From: Mizuhopecten yessoensis
Lineage: Eukaryota
Direction: 5' to 3'
Assembly: GCF_002113885.1 (NCBI RefSeq)
Contig: NW_018408895.1
Coordinates: 1,057,565 to 1,121,564, forward strand
Length of the DNA: 64,000 bases
Of this stretch, positions 16,546-64,000 are shown one piece after another. Numbering within the stretch: the first letter of the stretch is position 1; the number at the start of each line of letters is the position of its first letter. The translations under genes were made by a program, and so were the position numbers. Below the pieces are notes generated by a model. The model was not told where the DNA came from, did not search any database, and saw nothing but the letters and a program-made list of their open reading frames with translations.

Positions 16546-16676
16546 CCAAGTGGTTATATTAAGGCGTCTGGTATTCTGCTACCACTGGCCCTCCACCACT
16601 GGGTCGCAGGTTCGAGACCTACGTGGAGCAGTCACCAGACACTGGCCGTAGGTCGGTGGTTTTTCTCCCGGGACCT
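16546..16676 (+). mobile_element. 3'-truncated tRNA-derived SINE (family B)
   Basis: AGTGGTTA..AAGGCGTCTG..GCCCTCCACCA..GGTTCGAGACC (B box)..GGTCGGTGGTTTTTCTCCCGGG; homologous to 53047-53225(-). Confidence 0.75.
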
Positions 16677-19958: not shown

Positions 19959-20347
19959 TTTTTAGCTCACCTGGTCCGAAGGGAACCAATTTTGTATAAA
20001 CGGTGTGTCTAACCCCACTGGAGGCAGAGAGGCGGGGCCAAATAGGGGAAATAGAGGTAAAACCTTTAAAATCCTCTTCTACCAGCGAGATTGAGGGACT
20101 TTTTCCTTATTTAGTCTGGAGCATCCTTGGGCCAAGGTGTCTCAATTTTGTATAATTGGTGGGTATAGGGGCATAGGGGTGGGGCTCTGTTTGAAGTTTG
20201 TTCTCGCTATATCTCAAGTACTGGATGGATCTTTCTGAAATTTCATATGTACTTAAAGCACCTACCATGGAGTGCTATATCTTTACTTCATACCAATTAT
20301 TTTAAACATATTCAGGTGAGCGATACAGGCCCTCTGGGCCTCGTGTT
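19959..20347 (+). mobile_element. HINE/Helentron-type non-autonomous element (internally deleted)
   Basis: 5' TTTTTAGCTCACCTG; 3' CAGGTGAGCGATAC + stem-loop AGGCCC-TCT-GGGCCT + CGTGTT. Confidence 0.85.
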
Positions 20348-36616: not shown

Positions 36617-37715
36617 TTATTAGGTCACCTGAGACAAAGTCTCAAGTGACCTATTGCGATCGCCTTTTGTCCGTCGTCGTCCGTCGTCTGTCGTGCGTCC
36701 GTAATCAATTTACATTATCGACTTCTTCTCCAAAACCCCTAAACCAATTTCAATGAAATTTTGCAGAAACCTTCCATGGCCAAAGGTCAACTAAAATTGT
36801 GAATTATATGGTCCCCAGCCCCAAGGGGCCTGAGGGGCGGGGCCAAAAAGGGTAAAATTGACTAAAATTTCAAAAATCTTCTTCTCAAGATCCAGATATG
36901 GTAGAATCAAATACTCTTCATAGATAGAAGGGTCTTAAAGTGCTTTACTAGAATTGTGAATTTCTTGACCCTGGGGTCTCACGTTTTCCCCTGGGGAGGG
37001 GGTAAACTTTACTACAGTTTATATAGGGAAATCACATTTTGGACCCACATTTGTTTAATTGCCATTGGAAGTAATTCAATTTAGATTAGCATCATAAGTA
37101 TTGGGTAGCAGTTTGATAGTATGCACATATAAGCCCTGACTGACCCCCCTGGGCTGATGGGTGGGGCCAAAAAGGGTAGAATTGACTGAAATTTCAAAAA
37201 TCTTCTTCTCAAGACCCAGATATGGTAGAATCAAATACTCTTCATAGATGGAAGGGTCTTAAGGTGCTTTACCAAAATTGTGAATTTCATGACCCTTGGG
37301 TCTCACGTTTCCCCCTGGGGAGGGGGNNNNNNNNNNNNNNGGGGGCAAAATTTGTTATGGTTTATAATGGCAAATGATACTTTGAATATTACATGTTGAT
37401 AACTTGATTGGAATTATAACCCTAAGTTGACAGTTTGATACTTTGTAAATTTTGAGCCATCCCTACCCCCAAGGGCTGTAGGGTGGGGCCCAATGGAGTC
37501 TGTGTGCTAAAACAAAATTTCTTCATTTTCCTTGTTTAGAATCAGAGGTGCTAGTTTCAAATACTTTTCAGTCTTAAATCTGCATGCTAGATATTGAATA
37601 AGGTGGTTTTATTGTTTTTTGTCACTTTGAATAATATTTCTGTTCATGTTAAAAACAAAAATCAACACTCTGTATAAATATATCAGGTGACCGTTAAGGC
37701 CCATGGGCCTCTTGT
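36617..37715 (+). mobile_element. HINE/Helentron-type non-autonomous element with internal ~325 bp duplication
   Basis: 5' TTATTAGGTCACCTGAGAC-AAA-GTCTCAAGTGACCTA hairpin, (GTCC/GTCG)n microsatellite; 3' CAGGTGACC + AGGCCC-AT-GGGCCT + CTTGT. Confidence 0.9.
37327..37340. other. Assembly gap (14 N) within a poly-G run
   Basis: Run of n flanked by G tracts. Confidence 1.
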
Positions 37716-38789: not shown

Positions 38790-39552
38790 TAGATAATGGA
38801 TAGACAAGAACCAGAGATCTTCTAGGTAAGGTTTAGACAGGAACTAAAAAACTTCTAGATAAGGGTTAGACAGGAACCAGAAATCTTCTGGGTAAGGTTT
38901 AGACAGGATCTAAAAATCTCCGAGGTAATTATAAGGTTAAGATAGGAACTAGAAATCTTCTGGGTAAGGTTTAGACAGGAATCAGAAATCTTCTGGATAA
39001 GGTTTAGACATAACTCTTCTGGGTAAAGTTTAGACAGGAAGTAGAAATCTTCTGGGTAAGGTTTAGACAGGAACCAGAAATCTTCTGGGTAAGGTTTAGA
39101 CAGGAACAAGAAATCTTCTGAGAAGGTTTAGACAGAATTCTTCTGGGTAAAGTTTAGACAAAAACCAGAAATCTTCTAGGTAAGGTTTAGATAGGATCTA
39201 GAAATCTGCTAGGTAAGGTTTAGACAGGAACTAGAAATCTTCCGGGTAAGGTTTAGACAGAACTCTTCTGGGTTAGGTTTAGACAGGAACTAGAAATCTT
39301 CTTGGTAAGGTTTAGACAGGAACTAGAAATCTTCTGTGTAAAGTTTAGACAGGAACTAGAAATCTTTTGGGTAAGGTTAAGACAGAATTCTTCTCGGTAA
39401 AGTTTAGACAAAAACCAGAAATCTTTTGGGTAAGGTTTAGACAGGATCTAAAAATCTCCAAGGTAATTATAAGGTTAAGATAGGAACTAGAAATCTTCTG
39501 GGTAAGGTTTTAACAGGAACCAGAAATCCTCCAGATAAGGTTTTGACAGGAC
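38790..39552. repeat. Minisatellite, ~33 bp unit (26-41 bp variants), ~23 copies
   Basis: GGTAAGGTTTAGACAGGAAC(C/T)AGAAATCTTCTG repeated. Confidence 0.95.
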
Positions 39553-44811: not shown

Positions 44812-47800
44812 CCATGTATCCTACAGTCAATGAATACACTAATACCATAGGACAATCCATGTATCCTACAATTAATGCATACACTATGTATCCATGTATC
44901 CTACAATTAATGCAAACAAAATGTATCCTACAGTCAATGTATACACTCCTACCATAGGACAATCCATGTACCCTACAGTCAATGTATATACTACTACCAT
45001 AGGACAATCCATGTACCCTACAGTCAATGTATACACTACTACCATAGGACAATCCATGTATCCTACAGTCAATGTATACACTACTACCATAGTACAAAAC
45101 CATGAACCCTACAGTCAATGTATACACTCCTACCATAGTACAAAACCATGAACCCTACAGTCAATATATATACTGCTACCATAGGACAAACCATGTATCC
45201 TACAGTCAATGTATACACTCCTACCATAGGACAAACCATGTATCCTACAGTCAATGTATACACTTATAACATAGGACAAACCATGTACCCTACAGTCCAT
45301 GTATACACTTCTTACATAGGACAAACCATGTACCCTACAGTCAATGTATACACTACTACCATAGTACAAATCCATGTATCCTACTGTCAATGTATATACT
45401 GCTACCATAGGACAATCCATGTATCCTACAGCCAATGTCTATACTGCTACCATAGGACAAACCATGTATCCTACAGTCAATGTATACAATACTACCATAT
45501 TACAAAACCATGTATCCTACTGTCAATGTATATCCTGATACCATAGGACAATCCATGTATCCTACAGTCAATGTCTATACTGCTACCATAGGACAAACCA
45601 TGTATCCTTCAGTCAATGTATATACTTCTACCATAGGACAAACTATGTATCCTACAGTCAATGTATATACTACTACCATAGGACAGTATACACTCCTACC
45701 ATAGGACAAACCATGTATCCTACAGTCAAGGTATATACTACTACCATAGGACAAATCATGTATTCATACAGTCAATGTATATACTACTACCATAGTACAA
45801 AACCATGTATACATACAGTCAATGTATATACTTCTACCATAGGACAAACTATGTATCCTACAGTCAATGTATATACTACTACCATAGGTATCCTACAGTC
45901 AATGTATACACTACTACCATATTACAAAACCATGTATCCTACAGTCAATGTATACAATACTACCATATTACAAAACCATGTATCCTACTGTCAATGTATA
46001 TACTGCTACCACAGGACAATCCATGTATCCTACAGTCAATTTATACTACTACCATATGACAATCCATGTATCCTACAGTCAATGTATACTACTACCTTAT
46101 GACAATACATGTATCCTACAGTCAATGTATAGTACTACCATATGACAATCCATGTATCCTACAGTCAATGTATATACTTCTACCATAGGACAAACTATGT
46201 ATCCTACAGTCAATGTATATACTACTACCATAGGACAATCCATGTACCCTACAGTCAATGTATATACTTACCATAGTACAAATCCATGTATCCTACAGTC
46301 AATGTATACTACTACCTTATGACAATACATGTATCCTACAGTCAATGTATACACTTCTTACACAGGACAAACCATGTACCCTACAGTCCATGTATACACT
46401 TCTTACATAGGACAAACCACGTACCCTACAGTCAATGTATACACTACTACCATAGTACAAAATCATGTATACATACAGTCAATGTATACACTACGTACCA
46501 CCATAGGACAAAACCATGTACCCTACAGTCAATGGATATACCACTACCATAGGACAATCCATGTATCCTACAGCCAATGTCTATACTGCTACCATAGGAC
46601 AAACCATGTATCCTTCAGTCAATGTATATACTTCTACCATAGGACAAACTATGTATCCTACAGTCAATGTATATACTGCTACCCCTACAGTCAATGTATA
46701 TACTTTTACCATAGGACAAACCATGTATCCTACAGTCAATGTATACAATACTACCATATTACAAAACCATGTATCCTACTGTCAATGTATATACTGCTAC
46801 CACAGGACAATCCATGTATCCTACAGTCAATGTATATTATACACTACTACCATAGGACAATCCATGTATACTACAGTCAATGTCTATACTGCTACCATAG
46901 GACAAACCATGTATCCTACAGTCAATGTATACAATACTACCATATTACAAAACCATGTATCCTACTGTCAATGTATATCCTGATACCATAGGACAATCCA
47001 TGTATCCTACAGTCAATGTCTATACTGCTACCATAGGACAAACCATGTATCCTTCAGTCAATGTATATACTTCTACCATAGGACAAACCATATATCCTAC
47101 AGTCAATGTATATACTGCTACCCCTACAGTCAATGTATATACTTTTACCATAGGACAAACCATGTATCCTACAGTCAAGGTATATACTACTACCATAGGA
47201 CAAATCATGTACCCTACAATCAATGTATACACTACTACCATAGTACAAAACCATGTATACATACAGTCAATGTATATACTTCTACCATAGGACAAACCAT
47301 GTACCCTACAGTCAATGTATATGCTTCTACCAAAGGACAAATCATGTACCCTACAGTCAATGTATATGCTTCTACCATAGGACAAACCATGTATCCTACA
47401 GTCAATGTATACACTACTACCATAGTACAAAATCATGTATACATACAGTCAATGTATACACTGCGTACCGCCATAGGACAAAACCATGTACCCTACAGTC
47501 AATGAATATACTGCTACCATAGGACAAAATCATGTATACATACAGTCAATTTATACACTACGTACCACCATAGGACAAAACCATGTACCCTACAGTCAAT
47601 GTATATACTGCTACCATAGGACAAAATCATGTATACATACAGTCAATGTATACACTGCGTACCACCATAGGACAAAACCATGTACCCTACAGTCAATGTA
47701 TATCCTGCTACCATAGGACAAAATCATGTATACATACAGTCAATGTATACACTACGTACCACCATAGGACAAAACCATGTATACATAAACTGTCAATATG

Positions 47801-48767: not shown

Positions 48768-49812
48768 TAGAGTTATGTAATATTTGTGTATGTTTGGGTT
48801 GAGAGTTATGTGTTATTTGTGTATGTTTGGGTTGAGAGTTATGTATTATTTGTGTATGTTCGTGTATGTTTGGGTTGAGAGTTATGTAATATTTGTGTAT
48901 GTTTGGGTTTAAAGATGTGTATTGTTTGTGTATGTTTGGGTTGAGAGGTATGTGTTATTTGTGGTTGTTTGGGTTGAGAGTTATGAATTATTTGTGAATG
49001 TTTGGGTTGAGAGTTGTGTAATATTTGTGTATGTTTGGTATTACGTATTATTTGTGTATGTTTGGGTTGAGAGTTATGTGTTATTTGTGGTTGTTTGGGT
49101 TGAGAGTTATGTATTATTTGTGAATGTTTGGGTTGAGAGTTGTGTAATATTTGTGTATGTTTGGTATTACGTATTATTTGTGTATGTTTGGGTTGAGAGT
49201 TATGTGTAATTTGTGTATGTTTTGGTTGAGAGTTATGTGTTATTTGTGTATGTTTGTGTATGTTTGGGTTGAGAGTTATGTAGTATTTGTGTATGTTTGT
49301 GTATGTTTGGGTTGAAAGTTATGTAGTATTTGTGTATGTTTGGGTTGAGAGTTATGTAATATTTGTGTAAAGTTGTGTATGTTTGGGTTAAGAGTTATGT
49401 AGTATTTGTGTATGTTTGGGTTGAGAGTTATGTAGTATTTGTGTTTGTTTGGGTTGAGAGTTATGTGTAGTATTTGTGTATGTTTGGGTTGAGAGGTATA
49501 TAATATTTGTGTATGTTTGTGTATGTTTGGGTTGAGAGTTATGTAGTATTTGTGTATGTTTGTGTATGTTTGGGTTGAGAGTTTTGTATTATTTGTGTTT
49601 GTTTGGGTTGAGAGTTATGTGTTATTTGTGTATGTTTTGGTTGAGAGTTATGTGTAATATTTGTGTATGTTTGGGTTGAGAGTTATGTATTATTTGTGTA
49701 TGTTTGGGTTGAGAGTTTTGTATTATTTTTGTATGTTTCTGGGTTGAGAGTTATGTATTAATTGTGTATGTTTGGGTTGAGAGTTATGTTATATTTGTGT
49801 ATGTTTGGGTTG
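48768..49812. repeat. G/T-rich minisatellite, ~33 bp unit, ~30 copies
   Basis: TTGAGAGTTATGTATTATTTGTGTATGTTTGGG repeated; almost no C on the + strand. Confidence 0.97.
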
Positions 49813-50178
49813 CCTTGGTGCTATAAGTACATCTGCTGTTGTTTTATGTCAGTCTCTTGATAATCAATTAGAAAACTGTTTTTACAGGATACAGTGGGAT
49901 ACTTTGATGCTGAGATGATAAGAGATGAGTTTGGTTACTCCCTACAATCCCCGTCAATGTTATGGAAGTCCTGTGATAATTACAATACCACATGTTAACT
50001 ACTGCCATACAGTCTTACACATATCAATCTTTGTGTCTTGTTTGGTAAAACAAGCTTTTCCAGATAGAGTCGGATATGACCTATTCGTAAAAAGAAAGAA
50101 AAAACAAATCATTGGGTGTTGAAAATAGGTCAGAACCAAGGCTAGCCAAGGTTTTGACCCTAAATTCTGTGATTTTAG

Positions 50179-50266
50179 ATTATGTATTAAATATTCTTGT
50201 TTGTTTTTGTTATTTCAGGTAAGTGAGCTTTGTATATGCGCTAAGAGAAGTGGATCGGGGTAAGTA
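50179..50266 (+). promoter_or_regulatory. Candidate recursive splice site (ratchet point at 50218|50219) with 41-nt cryptic exon (50219-50259)
   Basis: ATTCTTGTTTGTTTTTGTTATTTCAG|GTAAGTGAG; no AG in 50179-50216; second donor CGGG|GTAAGTA at 50260. Confidence 0.6.
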
Positions 50267-52077
50267 GTATGCTGCTGAGATAAGGGAGGAAGCAAGGGAG
50301 ACAGAAAGCATTTCTTAAGTACATCTTGCTTTCAATGGAAGACTCCAACACCTTGGTTGTCAATAAAATAAATATATATGGCTCCGATGGGGAGCCAGAA
50401 AACCTGTATAGAATAGCGTAGCTGTGTTGAAGTCTACCCCACAAATCCCAACTGACCAGTTGGTGGCCACCACCATAACAACACATGCTGGTACTGGCCT
50501 CAGACGTACACATTATTGACCTTGTCTCCACATGACCTCGTCACAGTACCTCCAGCACTCTACTGTCTCCATCCAATCACATTCTCCAACTTTGCAAGAT
50601 TTTTTTTTCATTAGTTTCCATGTGACCACAGAAGGAAATCTGAGCTAAATGTTTCTTCCATTTATCTGGAGTCCGGACAGCCATACCAGGACAGCCATAC
50701 CAATTACGATGGTATCGGTCAGCCACGGTGGCTACATGTCGTCAATTTAGTGTTACAGTATCAGTTCTAATAAATGCCCCCTACTGTTTTTAATATCTGT
50801 TTATATACAACTTCCAGGAGGGCCAAGTAAACCAAAGCTTGTCTGTGAAAACTTAAGTAATACCAAATGAAAGATATTCCATTTACAGGGGAACCATGTT
50901 ACGTGAAAATTGCTGGTTCCAAAAACTTTGAGATGTACATGGTATTCTAGGCATCCTAGCTAAACTACAGAGAAATAAACTCGACCATAAGGACCAAGGA
51001 ACAGCTTCAGGATTAAAACGTGGTATCACAGATATCTTATATCGCAATAGCAATGTTAGACCTTCCACAATATTTACTCGAATACTGCATGGTTTAATTG
51101 TAGCAATATGTGTCAGCTTTATGACAAGAGACCATATGAGCAATGATTTTATGTGGTCAGCTGTTGGGCTGTTTTTTGTTACTTTTTTAACAGATCTGAT
51201 GAGCACAGTGTATGCGCCCATCATTGCAATATGGTAAAGCATGTTGGAAGTATCTGTGTAATACATTTAGTGCCCCAGTAATGGGCTCTAACTCAGGAAT
51301 GCAATTGAATGACCATTTGGTGTCATTGTTTAATTCAGTGAATTAGAAAGGAACAATTGTTTGGGTCAGTGGAGGGAAATCTAATTTGATCTGTGTAAAG
51401 GCTTCTAATCTGTAGGAGGCAGGAGTTTGACTGTGAGTGTTGCCACAGAGAAAAGCGATTACAGTAATTTGTTAGAAGATATTAAAAGGGGAAATTGAAG
51501 TCACTCGCATCTCTCTGTCATCACCATGACAACAACAGACGGTGGCAAGAACAGGAAATCATTGGTTCCTAATTACACATACCCAGGATATAGACAAAAT
51601 TATACTGTTTATAAATGTATTGCTCCATTATTGCATGTTGCTCAACAACAGGAATATCTGTCTCCTTTCAATTTATGTGTAATTGTTTAATTTTTGCATT
51701 TTCTGCAATGAAGTAAGGGGAGTCAACCAGAACCATGTTGTGTGTCCACCAATATGTTCATCTGTGTGTAGATGCAGTCTTGTCTGAACAGCTCCTCTTA
51801 GAACTTCTTTTAACTTCACTGTTGTAGTCCAAACCCTCTGTAATTGTGCACATGTGCTTTCTTTTTTTATCTTACTATTTTTATATGGGAGTTATGCCCC
51901 TTTTATAAAATTATAATCCAAGTCTTGTCAGGATAACTTTTACTATAGCTTACCAGATTTCATTGAACCTCATACCCACCACTACAGTCAGAAGTTGTGT
52001 ACACATTGTTTCCGTACATTATCCTTACTGGAATGATGCCACTGTTGCACAATCCTTAGTTATGTCATGTTAAATTG

Positions 52078-52345
52078 TTTATCAGCTCAACTGGTCCAAA
52101 GGGCCGGTGAGGTATGATGCAGCTTCTGTCATCTGCTGTCCATTCACTTTTTCCTTTAAAATGCTACTAGTCCTTAATGCCTCTGAGGATTTTGACTAAA
52201 CTTGGTCTGGAGCATCCTTGGGAAAAGGGGACTCAATTGTATAAACGTCCCATGGGGCAAAAGGACATGACCCAATGGGGAAACAGGTAAATCTTTAAAG
52301 TTATTCTCTTTCTGTATGAATAGATGAATTTTAACCAAATTTGTT
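52078..52345 (+). mobile_element. Degenerate 5' part of a HINE element
   Basis: TTTATCAGCTCAACTGGTCCAAAGGGCCGGTGAG; GTCTGGAGCATCCTTGGG shared with the 19959 element. Confidence 0.7.
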
Positions 52346-53046
52346 TTAGATATTGTTTTGCCTGTTATGATGGGGGAGAGTAGGTATAAGCTGCTTACAG
52401 TTCTTCCTTGTGATTTTATACTTAATTCTTGTATTTGTTACCCCGTGGTTTTGATCTAAAAATAACTAGGAAGCTGTAGATATCACACCAAGGGCACTGT
52501 ATGAACTTCACCTCCAAACTCAATCTAAATATTGTCCTTTTTTTCTTGCCGACATCATAGTATGACAATAAAACATCATGTTGCTCATGTATTATGGTAT
52601 TAGTATTTGATAAGCAGGGAACATCTCACATGAAATTGTGGACAATATGTTTGATTGGATGAAGCGTGGTGATATTGACAGTTCATTAGCATGTTGTATA
52701 ATGAGAGAGCTGTGTTAATGACTGTCTGGTTTGAATTCCAACATGACACTGGTGTTCACACACTAATGAACACATTTTGTATTTGTTATGAAGCATGCAC
52801 TATCCATTTGCATATCCTTTCAAGGTATTTGATTACAATTGTCCTCAGAGACCAAATGTTCGATCGACTGGAATGGTTGGGTTAAAGATTCTGTGATTGG
52901 CTATCAACAGATCGGACATATCATGTTAGTATCATATCTCATATTGATATTGCACCAGAAAACTACCACATCCAGAATATGACATTCCTGTATCATTAGA
53001 TTTTATATTGTTTGTGCTTTATGTCCTATTAAGAGCTATGCCTATT

Positions 53047-53225
53047 TAAGGACTAGCTAGGTTTTAGGGGTGGAGGAAAATAACGCAGTGCCAAGAGAAA
53101 AAACAATGACCTGTGGCCAGTACCTTGCGACCGTCCCCATGAAGGCCTTGAACATGTAACAGAATGGTGGAGGGCTAGTGATTTTAGATGGTCAGACACC
53201 TTATCCACTAGGCCACCCCGGTCCC
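53047..53225 (-). mobile_element. tRNA-derived SINE (family B)
   Basis: Minus strand GGGACCGGGGTGGCCTAGTGGATAAGGTGTCTG..CACTAGCCCTCCACCA..GTTCAAG..GTACTGGCCACAGGTC..TTTCCTCCACC. Confidence 0.75.
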
Positions 53226-53882
53226 TGATTTTACATGCATACAATATTCTGTGGGCTTGCATGCTTTAAACATTTACCTTATAAAAGATAGTCCCATTAT
53301 TAAATGTGGATCACAATGTCCCTGAAGAGAATGTTATAAAATAAATATCAACAGTCACTGCCTATCAAAGTGTTAAGCCTGACAGCTTGGAGTAAGAGGG
53401 ACTGTTGATATTTCTTTTTATTGTTATCAGCTCGATGGGTTTCTGTCAAATTTGACAAAAACATTGTTAATGCAACAGTAAATATATATAGAGCAAATTT
53501 TAATTTGACAGCATTCAAAAGTACTTTGTACATATATGGAAAGTACAGGGGGAGGTCTGACGTAGGGCTGCTGGTAGGGGCTTCATGGTAGATATGCATG
53601 TACATTAAACGTTTCTTTTAAGTTCCGTCTATTCTGGCAGCTACATATTCTGCTGCTGATCAACACAACGATCAAGTGACATCCCTTTTCACATTAGGAT
53701 GTTTCCTTCCATCAGTGGGCAAAGATACTAACTCCTTGATTCATGATATTTCAATTAACATGAAGTATAGAAAAATGCTGTCAGTTACCAGGTCTAAGAA
53801 CTATAACAGAATCACTGTTTTCATTTTGTAGTTAAAATAATTTTCCTAGCACATTCCCAGACATAACTTTTCACAAAAAGAT

Positions 53883-55407: not shown

Positions 55408-55859
55408 TTTTATTAGCTCACCTGGCCCAAAGGGCCAAGTGAGCTTATGCCGTTTTGCGGCGTCCGTCGTCCGTCCGTCGTCAATATTTTACTTTAAGCA
55501 ACTTCTTCTCAATAACCAAAATAACTATTTGGCCAGTAGCATGCTGGAATAAGGGGGTACCAAGTTTGTTCAAATGAATGACCTTGACCCACTTTCAAGG
55601 TCACAGGTCAAATGTTTTAAAATCTTCAACAAACTTCTTCTCATTAACCAAAAGGCCCAGGGTACTGATATTGGGCCTGTAGCAATCAGGGCTACCAAAT
55701 TTGTTCAAATAACCTTGACCCACTTTCAACCTAATGTCATTGTTTGACATTCAAGGTCACACTGATATTTTGCCTGTAGCTGTATTTTAGTCCACTTTTA
55801 AGATTACAAGTGTGAGATTAATACCAGGTGAGCGATGCAGGCCCATTGGGCCTCTTGTT
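55408..55859 (+). mobile_element. HINE/Helentron-type non-autonomous element
   Basis: 5' TTTATTAGCTCACCTGGCCC-AAA-GGGCCAAGTGAGCT hairpin, (GTCC)n; 3' CAGGTGAGCGATGC + AGGCCC-ATT-GGGCCT + CTTGTT. Confidence 0.9.
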
Positions 55860-56611
55860 GTAAGTGGTAGTCAATTATTGATGTAAAGGCAGAGGTCACT
55901 GGGGGTCAAATGTTATACATACACAGAGGGTCAGCTGTTAGTGGTAGTCAACTGTTTAACGTCAGAGGTAATTGAAGGTCAGATATTAAGGGTAGTTAAC
56001 TGTGGATGTCAAGGAAGAGGTCATTCATTTTAAATGTTAATGATATTGAACTGTTGGTGTCGGGGCAAAGGTCATTCAAGGTCAAGACAGAGAGACATAA
56101 AATTTAGCTTCGTCAGGTTAATATAGCCGGATTAAATGCTAACCTTTGACAGTTAGGCAATAGAGAGAACTATAAGTATACCTATATACCATAGAGTTTG
56201 TTAAAAGGCTGGTAAACCAGGGATGGATGTATCCGCAGCCATAGAGGAGCTGTACGCCAGGTCAGAGTTATAGGCCAACTCATTTATTTACCGATTCCAA
56301 TAAATCTCAAAGTGTTGTTCCTAGTGTTGATGTAGGCTGGATTGATATTGGAAATACATGTCTCTCCTAGCTGTGATGTAATGGTAACAGTGTTCAGGAT
56401 ATGGGAAATGCATGTGATTCTCTCAGTAAATTGCAGTGTTGCTGATGAAGATTTAAAAATTATCAATGAAGAAAGCAAGATAATATAAACTGCCTTCCAT
56501 AATGTGCATTTACCCTCCGTACCTCACACATTTAGACGGGGAAGTGTGACTGTAATTAAGAATATTGGTGATAAATCACCAGCAATAAAATAGAGTACAG
56601 GTCCCTGCCTG

Positions 56612-58738
56612 ATCAGCTGATGGTATGGGGAATATCCTCAACAGTCACTGTATCGGCTGATGGTATGGGGAATACCCTCAACCGTCACTCTATCAGCTGT
56701 AGATACAGGAAATATACTCAACAGTCACTGTATCAGCTGATGGTATGGGGAATATCCTCAACAGTCACTGTATCGGCTGATGGTATGGGGAATACCCTCA
56801 ACAGTCACTCTATCAGCTGTTGATACAGGAAACACACTCAACAGTCACTGTATCAGCTGATGGTATGGGGAATACCCTCAACAGTTACTGTATCAGCTGT
56901 AGATACAGGAAATACACTCAACAGTCACTGTATCAGCTGATGGTATGGAGAATACCCTCAACAGTCACTGTATCAGCTGATGGTATGGAGAATACCCTCA
57001 ACAGTCACTGTATCAGCTGATGGTATGGAGAATACCCTCAACAGTCACTGTATCAGCTGATGGTATGGAGAATACCCTCAACAGTCACTGTATCAGCTGA
57101 TGGTATGGAGAATACCCTCAACAGTCACTGTATCAGCTGATGGTATGGAGAATACCCTCAACAGTCACTGTATCAGCTGATGGTATGGAGAATACTCTCA
57201 ACAGTCACTGTATCGGCTGATGGTATGGGGAATACCCTCAACAGTCACTCTATCAGCTGTTGATACAGGAAACACACTCAACAGTCACTGTATCAGCTGA
57301 TGGTATGGGGAATACCCTCAACAGTTACTGTATCAGCTGTAGATACAGGAAATACACTCAACAGTCACTGTATCAGCTGATGGTATGGAGAATACCCTCA
57401 ACAGTCACTGTATCAGCTGATGGTATGGAGAATACCCTCAACAGTCACTGTATCAGCTGATGGTATGGAGAATACCCTCAACAGTCACTGTATCAGCTGA
57501 TGGTATGGAGAATACCCTCAACAGTCACTGTATCAGCTGATGGTATGGAGAATACCCTCAACAGTCACTGTATCAGCTGATGGTATGGAGAATACCCTCA
57601 ACAGTCACTGTATCAGCTGATGGTATGGAGAATACTCTCAACAGTCACTGTATCGGCTGATGGTATGGGGAATACCCTCAACAGTCACTCTATCAGCTGT
57701 TGATACAGGAAACACACTCAACAGTCACTGTATCAGCTGATGGTATGGGGAATACCCTCAACAGTTACTGTATCAGCTGTAGATACAGGAAATACACTCA
57801 ACAGTCACTGTATCAGCTGATGGTATGGAGAATACCCTCAACAGTCACTGTATCAGCTGATGGTATGGAGAATACCCTCAACAGTCACTGTATCAGCTGA
57901 TGGTATGGAGAATACCCTCAACAGTCACTGTATCAGCTGATGGTATGGAGAATACCCTCAACAGTCACTGTATCAGCTGATGGTATGGAGAATACCCTCA
58001 ACAGTCACTGTATCAGCTGATGGTATGGAGAATACCCTCAACAGTCACTGTATCAGCTGATGGTATGGAGAATACCCTCAACAGTCACTGTATCAGCTGA
58101 TGGTATGGAGAATACTCTCAACAGTCACTGTATCGGCTGATGGTATGGGGAATACCCTCAACAGTCACTCTATCAGCTGTTGATACAGGAAATACACTCA
58201 ACAGTCACTGTATCAGCTGATGGTATGGGGAATACCCTCAACAGTCACTCTATCAGCTGTTGATACAGGAAACACACTCAACAGTCACTGTATCAGCTGA
58301 TGGTATGGGGAATACCCTCAACAGTCACTCTATCAGCTGTTGATACAGGAAACACACTCAACAGTCACTGTATCAGCTGATGGTATGGGGAATACCCTCA
58401 ACAGTCACTCTATCAGCTGTTGATACAGGAAACACACTCAACAGTCACTGTATCAGCTGATGGTATGGGGAATACCCTCAACAGTCACTCTATCAGCTGT
58501 TGATACAGGAAACACACTCAACAGTCACTGTATCAGCTGATGGTATGGGGAATACCCTCAACAGTCACTCTATCAGCTGTTGATACAGGAAACACACTCA
58601 ACAGTCACTGTATCAGCTGATGGTATGGGGAATACCCTCAACAGTTACTGTATCAGCTGTAGATACATGAAACACAATCAACAGTCACTGTATCAGCTGA
58701 TGGTATGGGGAATACCCTCAACAGTCCCTGTATCAGCT
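56612..58738. repeat. 40-bp minisatellite, ~53 copies, with higher-order (11/12-mer and dimer) structure
   Basis: ATCAGCTGATGGTATGG(G/A)GAATACCCTCAACAGTCACTGT; variant monomer TGATACAGGA at 56821, 57261, 57701, 58181, then every 80 bp to 58581. Confidence 0.98.
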
Positions 58739-59984: not shown

Positions 59985-62900
59985 CCCGTCATGTACCATC
60001 TTGTTACGTACTGTCGTGTCCCGTCTTGTTACGTACTGTCGTGTCCCATCTTGTTACGTTCTGTCGTGTCCCGTCTTGTTACGTACTGTCATGTCCCATC
60101 TTGTTACGTTCTGTCGTGTCCCGTCTTGTTACGTACTGCCATATCCCATCTTGTTACGTACTGTCATGTCCCGTATTGTTACGTACTGTCATGTCCCGTC
60201 TTGATACTACTGCCATGTCCCGTCTTGTTACCTACTGCCATGTCCCGTCTTGTTACCTACTGCCATGTCCCGTCTTGTTACCTACTGCCATGTCCCGTCT
60301 TGTTACGTACTGTCCTGTCCCCTCTTGTTACGTACTGCCCTGTCCCTTCTTATGTCCCGTCTTGTTACGTACTGTCATATGTCCCGTCTTGTTACGTACT
60401 GTCATATGTCCCGTCTTGTTACGTACTGTCATATGTCCCGTCTTGTTACGTACTGTCATGTCCCGTCTTGTTACGTACTGTCATGTCCCGTCTTGTTACT
60501 ACTGCCATGTCCCGTCTTGTTACGTACTGCCATGTCCCGTCTTGTTACGTACTGTCATGTCCCATCTTGTTACGTACTGTCGTGTCCGGACTTGTTACGT
60601 ACTGTCGTGTCCCGTCTTGTTACGTTCTGTCATGTCCCGTCTTGTTACGTACTGTCATGACCCGTCTTGTTATGTACTGCCATGTCCCGTCTTGGTACGT
60701 ACTGTCCTGTCCCATCTTGTTACGTACTTGTTACGTACTGCCATGTCCCGACTTGTTACGTACTGCCATGTCCCCTCTTGTTACCTACTGTTGTGTCCCG
60801 TCTTGTTACGTACTGTCCTGTCCCATCTTGTTACGTACTTGTTACGTACTGCCATGTCCCGACTTGTTACGTACTGTCGTGTCCCGTCTTGTTACATACT
60901 GTCCTGTCCCATCTTGTTACGTACTGCCATGTCCCCTCTTGTTACCTACTGTTGTGTCCCGTCTTGTTACGTACTGTCCTGTCCCGTCTTGTTACGTACT
61001 GCCATGTCCCATATTGTTACGTACTGCCATGTCCCATCTTGTTACGTACTGCCATGTCCCATCTTGTTACCTACTGTTGTGTCCCGTCTTGTTACGTACT
61101 GTCCTGTCCCATCTTGTTACGTACTGCCATGTCCCGACTTGTTAGGTACTGTCGTGTCCTGTCTTGTTACGTACTGTCGTGTCCAGTCTTTTTACGTACT
61201 GTCCTGTCCCATCTTGTTACTTACTGCCATGTCCCGACTTGTTACGTAATGTCAAGTCCCGTCTTGTTACGTACTGTCGTGTCCCTTCTTATGTCCCGTC
61301 TTGTTACGTACTGTCATGTCCCTTCTTATGTCCCGTCTTGTTACGTACTGCCATGTCCCATCTTGTTTCTTACTGTCATGTCCCGTCTTGTTACGTACTG
61401 TCATGTCCCTTCTTATGTCCCGACTTGTTACGTACTGTCATGTCCCATCTTGTTACGTACTGTCGTGTCCCGTCTTGGTACGTACTGTCATGTCCAGTCT
61501 TGTTGCGGACTGTCATGTCCCGTCTTATTGCGTACTGTCGTGTCCCGTCTTGTTACCTACTGTCATGTCCCGTCTTATTGCGTACTGTCGTGTCCCGTAT
61601 TGTTATGTACTGCCATGTCCCGTCTTGTTACGTACTGTCGTGTCCCGTCTTGTTACCTACTGTCATGTCCCGTCTTGTTTCCTACTGTCATGTCCCGTCT
61701 TGTTATGTACTGTCATGTCCCGTCTTGTTGCGTACTGTCATGTCCCGTCTTATTGCGTAATGTCGTGTCCCGTATCGTTATGTACTGCCATGTCCCGTCT
61801 TGTTACGTACTGTCGTTTCCCGTCTTGTTACGTACTGTCATGTCCCGTCTTGTTGCGTACTGTCATGTCCCGTCTTATTGCGTACTGTCGTGTCCCATAT
61901 CGTTATGTACTGCCATGTCCCGTCTTGTTACGTACTGTCGTGTCCCGTCTTGTTACGTACTGTCCTGTCCCATCTTGTTACGTACTGCCATGTCCCGACT
62001 TGTTACGTACTGTCATGTCCCGTCTTGTTACCTACTGTCATGTCCCGTCTTGTTATGTACTGTCATGTCCCATCTTATTGCGTACTGTCGTGTCCCGTAT
62101 CGTTACGTACTGTCGTGTCCCATCTTGTTACGTACTGTCATGTCCCGGCTTGTTACGTACTGTCATGTCCCATCTTTTTACGTTCTGTCATGTCCCGTCT
62201 TGTTACATACTGTCATGTCCCCTCTTGTTACATACTGTCATGTCCCGTCTTGTTACGTACTGTTATTTCCCGACTTGTTACGTACTGTCATGTCCCATCT
62301 TGTTACGTACTGTCGTGTCACGTCTTGTTACGTACTGTCATGTCCCGCCTTGTTTCCTACTGTCATGTCCCATCTTTTTACGTACTGTCGTGGCCCGTCT
62401 TGTTACGTACTGTCATGTCCAGTCTTGTTGCGTACTGTCATGTCCCGTCTTATTGCGTACTGTCGTGTCCCATATCGTTATGTACTGCCATGTCCCGTCT
62501 TGTTACGTACTGTCGTGTCCCGTCTTTTTACGTACTGTCATGTCCCGACTTGTTACGTACTGTCATGTCCCGACTTGTTACGGACTGTCATGTCTTGTTA
62601 CGTACTGCCATGTCCCATCATGTTTCTTACTGTCATGTCCCGTCTTGTTACGGACTGTCATGTCCAGTCTTGTTGCGTACTGTCATGTCCCGTCTTATTG
62701 CGTACTGTCGTGTCCCATATCGTTATGTACTGCCATGTCCCGTCTTGTTACGTACTGCCATGTCCCGTCTTGTTACGTACTGCCATGTCCCATCATGTTT
62801 CTTACTGTCATGTCCCGTCTTGTTACGTACTGTTATTTCCCGACTTGTTACGTACTGTCATGTCCCATCTTGTTACATACTGTCATGTCCCGTCTTGTTA

Positions 62901-63605
62901 CGTACTGCCATGTCCCATCATGTTTCTTACTGTCATGTCCCGTCTTGTTACGGACTGTCATGTCCAGTCTTGTTGCGTACTGTCATGTCCCGTCTTGTTA
63001 CGTTCTGTCATGTCCCGACTTGTTACGTACTGTCATGTCCCATTTTGTTACGTTCTGTCATGTCCCGTCTTGTAACCTACTGTCATGTCCCGTCTTGTTA
63101 TCTACTGTCATGTCCCATCTTATTGCGTACTGTCGTGGCCCGTATCGTTACGTACTGTCGTGTCCCGTCTTTTTACGTACTGTCATGTCCCGACTTGTTA
63201 AGTACTGTCATGTCCCATCTTGTTACGTACTGTCATGTCCCATCTTTTTACGTTCTGTCATGTCCCGTCTTGTTACATACTGTCATGTCCCCTCTTGTTA
63301 CATACTGTCATGTCCCGTCTTTTTACGTACTGTCGTGTCCCGTCTTTTTACGTACTGTCATGTCCCGACTTGTTAAGTACTGTCATGTCCCATCTTGTTA
63401 CGTACTGTCGTGGCCCGTCTTGTTACGTACTGTCATGTCCCGACTTGTTACGTACTGTCATGTCCCATCTTTTTACGTACTGTCGTGTCCCGTCTTGTTA
63501 AGTACTGTCATGTCCCGTCTTGTTAAGTACTGTCATGTCCAGTCTTGTTACGTACTGTCATGTCCCGTCTTGTTACGTACTGTCATGTCCCGTCTTGTTA
63601 CGTGC
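59985..63605. repeat. Large minisatellite, 25 bp unit, ~145 copies
   Basis: TCTTGTTACGTACTGTCATGTCCCG repeated. Confidence 0.99.
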
Positions 63606-63733
63606 TGTTGAGATTCATTGTCATGACTCTACAAACTTATTTTCATGCAAATTTTCATCAAAGTTTATACAAAGGTCAAATATGAGTTTGTATTTTTAGG
63701 TTCACAAGGTCAAAGCCAAGGTCACTGTTGCTA

Positions 63734-64000
63734 TTTATTAGCTCACCGGGTCTGAAGGATCAAGGTGAGCTTATGCCATACCGTGGCGTCCGTCCGTCAA
63801 CCATTTCTTTAAACGACATCTTCTTCTTAACTATTGATTGGAACTTAACTAAATTTGACCGGAAGCATTCCTAGGTGGTAGGGATTCAAAATTGTACAAA
63901 TGGTGGGGCTGACCCCCATGGGGGCTGAGGGGCGGGTCCAAAAGGGGGCAATTTGGCTATATTGATTTAAGCGACTTTTCCTCTGTAACTAAGAGATGGA
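63734..64000 (+). mobile_element. HINE element 5' part, truncated by window end, inserted next to an older HINE-like fragment (~63630-63733)
   Basis: TTTATTAGCTCACC..GGTGAGCTTATGCC, (GTCC)n, GACCCCCATGGGG..GGGGCGGG; upstream AAGGTCACTGTTGCTA resembles the 42591 core repeat. Confidence 0.85.

Follow-up and report, generated by a model that had tools for sequence, protein, structure and literature searches.

Is the point at which a 3' splice acceptor runs directly into a 5' splice donor, in a 64-kb stretch of the genome of the scallop Mizuhopecten yessoensis (contig NW_018408895.1; this whole stretch is called the window), a place where a long intron is removed stepwise? The initial annotation of the window had read this fused site, which lies on the + strand, as a ratchet point for recursive splicing. 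We consider it probable that the site is a real ratchet point in a long + strand intron. Support came from an assembled contig of a sequencing run, here called X1, which had its edge at the acceptor AG, with zero depth upstream and unspliced intron sequence downstream; this falls short of proof.

The sequence elements were found where the initial annotation had placed them, namely a 38-nt AG-free tract, AG/GTAAGT at 50218/50219 and a second GTAAGT at 50260 (Table 1). The tract consists of 24 T, 8 A, 4 G and 2 C, its 5' half is A-rich, and the nearest AG on its 5' side is at 50177-78. The 41 nt between the two donors contain AAGAGAAG. Translation of all three frames bore out that this stretch would shift the frame and is stopped in two of them: its length is not a multiple of 3, and the single open frame reaches a stop one codon beyond the second donor. 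Reading onward from 50219, a stop is met in every frame within 45 nt. The fused site lies about 400 nt beyond a 33-bp minisatellite that ends at 49812. It is outside the tandem arrays, has no second copy in the window and is not covered by high-depth repeat contigs, in agreement with the unique, non-repeat location claimed earlier. As a single-copy site outside arrays, it is not one of the tandem copies of exon end plus donor that make up a splice-donor minisatellite. Compared with run X1, the unique intron DNA of the window showed single-base differences at 50317, 51280, 51968 and 52817. None fell within 50217-50316, which comprises the 41 nt and both donors; these sites are too few to show constraint.

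We scored acceptors and donors with an approximate splice-site weight matrix, the values of which are our own approximations. The fused site reached about 14.9-15.1, and the runner-up among about 500 AGGT sites on both strands of the 64 kb scored 6.4. A score of at least 14 occurred in none of 450 Markov simulations of the unique DNA of the window (orders 2, 4 and 5), the maximum being 13.5. The chance of another GTAAGT within 20-110 nt was about 2%. If one mismatch is tolerated, the bare 12-mer is expected 0.67 times and is not significant by itself. Since it is not rare alone, the signal is the combination of tract, fusion and second donor. Motif scoring and simulation thus identified the direct fusion of an acceptor to a strong donor (AG/GT) that marks ratchet points, and the short cryptic recursive-splicing exon (RS-exon) with a downstream donor, which also marks them, is present as a sequence feature. 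Other AG/GTRAG sites in the window were rejected as candidates: they have weak tracts, or are ends of interspersed repeats (20315, 55827, 63764), or belong to the minisatellite at 38801-39551.

These scores bear on the explanation that the motif arose by chance or is a relic, and is not used. The contig edge would then have arisen artefactually in assembly or filtering, or would mark a structural allele if the library contains DNA. A genome-wide scan picks extreme sites, and score statistics alone do not prove function. A search with an exact 23-mer against metagenome contigs gave 0 matches elsewhere, which is uninformative as to conservation. The failure of every simulation to attain the score speaks against chance, and the sequencing runs described next, which leave room for X1 being DNA, contributed further to our view that this explanation is quite improbable.

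The region 49820-53800 was tested for words shared with sequencing runs, and 13 runs hold such words. Five of them, with a word share of 0.95-0.97 and 690-810 million contig letters, were taken as DNA. The runs X1-X4 of a study termed P1, which are RNA by guess, had shares of 0.57-0.85 and 257-390 million contig letters. Two metatranscriptome runs, the sole holders with RNA on record, had shares of 0.17-0.21. No ordinary mRNA library was among the listed holders of this region; many runs lay outside that search. The region is present in probable total-RNA runs. The share of X1 was 0.85 with a sampling error of about 0.02, and its assembly comprises 389 million letters. This favours total or nuclear RNA over DNA, because a DNA run at a depth of about 11 is expected to look like the 0.95 runs, with a share of about 0.95 and about 700-800 million letters.

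The X1 contig has a length of 1,984 nt and a depth of 10.9. It aligned to 50217-52175, with 25 letters unaligned. Its edge at 50217 coincides exactly with the acceptor AG in unique DNA, and from there it covers about 2 kb of intron without a break. The depth of X1 was zero over 49819-50216, so that the coverage steps from 0 to 10.9 at the site and shows no decay over 3 kb in the X1 contigs, the records of which may be filtered. A second X1 contig covers 52209-53123 at a depth of 13.9. The other end of the first contig, 52175, falls within an interspersed repeat at about 52078-52245 that is covered by contigs of a depth near 1,000, and a break there is therefore expected. For the edge at 50217, an artefactual break could have fallen on any of about 2,000 unique bases and had no reason to hit the acceptor AG, which argues against the chance explanation. 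We also rejected a transcription start at this position, because the acceptor would then lack an explanation.

The 25 unaligned letters would sit before 50217, because a minus-strand record at 53165 suggests that numbering follows the record's own strand. Placed upstream, they could be the end of an exon ending in AG; 25 letters plus AG plus GTA would give a 30-letter overlap, as at a branch in a 31-mer graph. Placed at the other end, they would leave a contig that starts exactly at 50217, as expected where spliced and unspliced paths merge. Either placement would need foreign sequence entering at the acceptor. The contig looks as a spliced intermediate would, in which an upstream exon has been joined to the ratchet point.

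A trans-splice acceptor would give the same picture, with no upstream RNA and a short stretch of foreign letters, the last two being AG, at the 5' end. The foreign letters, about 27 in number, would be a spliced leader and the 41 nt a first exon before a giant first intron. Mature mRNA would keep the 41 nt, which was not seen, and the donor at +1 would have no explanation. The literature search found spliced leaders for parasites of bivalves only and none for bivalves themselves. We regard trans-splicing at this site as very improbable.

The main rival explanation is that the acceptor is an ordinary one and opens a long last exon, belonging to a 3' untranslated region or a long non-coding RNA, that starts with GTAAGT by chance. 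Splicing into 50219 would then be real, and the donor would never be reused. This explanation predicts the same picture in X1, with the contig edge on the AG, an empty upstream side, unspliced sequence downstream and no fall of depth over 3 kb. The displayed depth stops near 53300, and an AATAAA follows at 53340. Several findings speak against this explanation. The downstream hole in the X1 records begins at a repeat edge (about 53200). Modelling gave a share of 0.852 with upstream sequence absent and downstream sequence present, 0.83 for the reverse, 0.945 with both present and 0.73 with neither; if both holes were real, as a last exon predicts, the share would be 0.73 and not 0.85. The observed share agrees with 0.852 and not with 0.945, a value that suits the runs taken as DNA. 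Of the two displayed holes, one would thus be real and the other probably due to record filtering; which is which does not follow from the share. A 3-kb exon is also expected in mRNA-type runs, whereas the only runs on record are the two metatranscriptome libraries with low shares, and the runs X14 and X16 are empty; these two are 'RANDOM' libraries, of which about 19% was read, with repeat-derived reads only, and are uninformative on the site. Two perfect donors would be a coincidence, and the stops in all frames shortly after the acceptor do not fit well either. We concluded that a last exon is unlikely.

The second donor raises the question of whether the 41 nt are used as an exon. In an exon scan of the window, 50219-50259 came first with a score of 16.9, and the second candidate scored 12.5. 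Pairing with the U1 5' end, which also entered the exon scan, was predicted at -11.9 kcal/mol for the donor at 50260, against -11.3 to -11.5 kcal/mol for its recreated counterpart. The top exon score, the frame shift and a second donor whose predicted U1 pairing equals that of the regenerated donor would all suit a poison or tissue-specific cassette exon. Its second donor would be used normally, and its product would be lost to nonsense-mediated decay or occur in unsampled tissues only. The 41 nt alone were not listed in any record of X1, X5, X14 or X16; the gene may be silent in X14 and X16, and rare forms are dropped from contigs. The X1 contig runs across 50260 without a break, though rare branches are lost from contigs as well. 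A cassette exon leaves the perfect donor at its first base unexplained. We consider this explanation improbable; use as a cassette exon can coexist with recursion.

Several points weigh against a ratchet point. The evidence consists of assembled contigs from one run, which give neither strand nor true start, and the RNA nature of X1, the single supporting run, is a guess. The share of X1 also fits upstream sequence that is present but hidden (0.83). The displayed records are filtered, and the upstream hole alone proves nothing. The side of the 25 letters was deduced from the numbering of other minus-strand records. The depth did not fall over 3 kb (10.9, then 13.9). Run X5, which has RNA on record and five listed low-depth pieces in unique DNA, none of them upstream of 50371, is too thin to reveal a step. 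Finally, no other strong + strand ratchet point was found anywhere in the 64 kb.

Table 1. Features of the fused splice site and its flanks in the 64-kb window.
Feature	Positions	Strand	Remarks	Basis
Branch-point-like motifs	50154-50175	+	weak, 48-64 nt 5' of the acceptor, none a strong match	pattern scan only
Polypyrimidine tract	50179-50216	+	AG-free, U-rich, 38 nt	sequence scan
Ratchet-point 3' splice acceptor AG	50217-50218	+	alignment of the X1 contig begins at 50217	motif scoring and read alignment
Ratchet-point 5' donor GTAAGT	50219-50224	+	would be regenerated after the first splicing step	sequence
Candidate cryptic RS-exon	50219-50259	+	41 nt, frame-shifting, top exon candidate of the window, inclusion not seen	sequence and contigs
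Second donor GTAAGT (RS-exon donor)	50260-50265	+	predicted U1 pairing similar to the ratchet donor	sequence
Intron sequence 3' of the site	50217-53123	+ (from the motif, not from contigs)	unspliced in X1 contigs (depth 10.9, 13.9), patchy in X5	read alignment

If the ratchet point is used, the donor at 50260 and the acceptor at 50217-18 would first define the 41-nt stretch as an exon. The X1 contig suggests that an exon outside the window, probably ending in AG, is then spliced to 50219 during transcription, by which the upstream intron segment would be removed. This join would recreate AG/GTAAGT, which would be used instead of the donor at 50260 and be spliced to the next acceptor beyond the window. 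The cryptic exon would be lost with the next intron segment and nothing of the site would be left in the mRNA, consistent with the lack of inclusion. Skipping may need more than donor strength, since both donors are predicted to be nearly equal in U1 pairing; position or exon elements may decide between them. If the 41 nt were included on rare occasions, the frame would be shifted and the transcript would probably undergo decay. No strong + strand ratchet point or exon was found in 1-50178, and unless weaker sites take part, the first intron segment would thus measure 50 kb or more.

Ratchet points with cryptic RS-exons have been described in Drosophila, e.g., in kuz, Bx and Ubx (PMC8605326, PMC6110457). 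The cryptic exon of fly sites is short (about 50 nt), out of frame and closed by a second donor, and the ratchet donor is generally the stronger of the two (PMC8605326). The RNA criteria applied in flies are junction reads, spanning pairs and sawtooth coverage (PMC6110457). The scallop site shares with the fly sites the AG/GT after a strong pyrimidine tract, in an intron that is long in flies and would be long here, and the short out-of-frame cryptic exon with a second donor (41 nt in the scallop). It may also share an intermediate in total RNA and not in mRNA, to which in the scallop one contig of a probable RNA run points. Apart from the phylum, the two systems differ in that the scallop donors are predicted to be equal. 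Moreover, sawtooth coverage, conservation and donor reuse were shown in flies, whereas the scallop site is known from motif and contigs. The scallop site probably works like an intronic ratchet point of Drosophila. Its sequence features agree with those of the fly sites, and no test failed.

Vertebrate recursive-splicing sites in long neuronal genes (Sibley 2015, Duff 2015) are summarised in PMC13149111 and PMC8605326. As far as these summaries go, they share with the scallop site exon definition followed by competition between two donors. Most mammalian RS-exons are, according to the same summaries, expressed exons that are retained via the exon junction complex, which sets them apart from the scallop site, and nine sites in long introns are described there as fully suppressed (PMC13149111, PMC8605326). 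The scallop site looks like the suppressed, fly-like kind.

The surroundings gave no indication of the host gene. None of 46 stop-free segments of at least 75 codons in the unique DNA of the window had a match in Pfam, no Rfam family matched in the window, and exon scan and Pfam together revealed no coding exon in the 64 kb. The host gene is therefore placed outside the window. Over most of the unique DNA the + strand has a mild skew of T over A and G over C, which is compatible with a + strand intron and is not proof of it. Tandem repeats make up about 27% of the window, and all of its long open reading frames are minisatellite translations. Very long minisatellites are located at 59988-63608 (25-bp x145), 56612-58738 (40-bp x53) and 44921-47787 (45-bp x62); the + strand reading frames of up to 802 codons in the 25-bp array are repeat artefacts. 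The 33-bp minisatellite at 38801-39551 contains 12 donor-like GTAAGG motifs on the + strand (3 after AG, 8 after GG) and no pyrimidine tract. If the window belongs to a + strand intron, they could act as decoy donors. A run of G is interrupted by 14 N at 37327-37340.

Copies of an interspersed element are present at 52078-52245, 55409-55860, 19959-20347 and 63734-63900 and had very high depth in the RNA runs. Most copies have the ends TTAGCTCACC and GGTGAGCGAT and an internal CCGT microsatellite, and the ends of the element produce spurious AG/GTGAG sites. We take the element to resemble the non-autonomous Helentron (HINE/DINE-like) elements of bivalves. The segment 53095-53217 is a fragment of a repeat that elsewhere forms an expressed tandem array, its units measuring about 51 nt, and a degenerate copy of this repeat is found on the minus strand at 16560-16667. 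The array showed many backward joints in X14 and X16 in both mate directions. Joints at 53165-53216 were rejected as splicing at this locus, their source being this expressed tandem-repeat family elsewhere. At 53338-53418 there is an imperfect palindrome of 81 nt with inverted ends, resembling a miniature inverted-repeat transposable element or a hairpin, and the AATAAA at 53340 lies inside it.

A review of 2026 names Drosophila, mouse and human as the organisms with documented recursive splicing and does not mention molluscs (PMC13149111). Our full-text search for recursive splicing in molluscs, lophotrochozoa, scallop and cephalopods found no relevant paper, with most subscription journals outside its scope. 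The initial annotation had known of no description in molluscs, and this holds within the searched full-text literature and the review. The mechanism itself is not new; its occurrence in a phylum for which no report was found would be. On balance, and with confidence only somewhat above even, we propose that molluscs regularly remove giant introns by recursive splicing of the fly type with suppressed cryptic exons, this site being one of many. If this is true, the mechanism exists in all three main bilaterian branches and therefore probably goes back to their common ancestor, instead of having been invented separately by flies and by vertebrates. With a working site in a bivalve, the bilaterian branch that is still missing would be represented, and public data could then be used to test two points: the ancestral status of recursive splicing and the universality of the cryptic-exon design. 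The starting point for such a genome-wide survey would be this one site together with run X1, from a study with three sister runs, and its putative intermediate.
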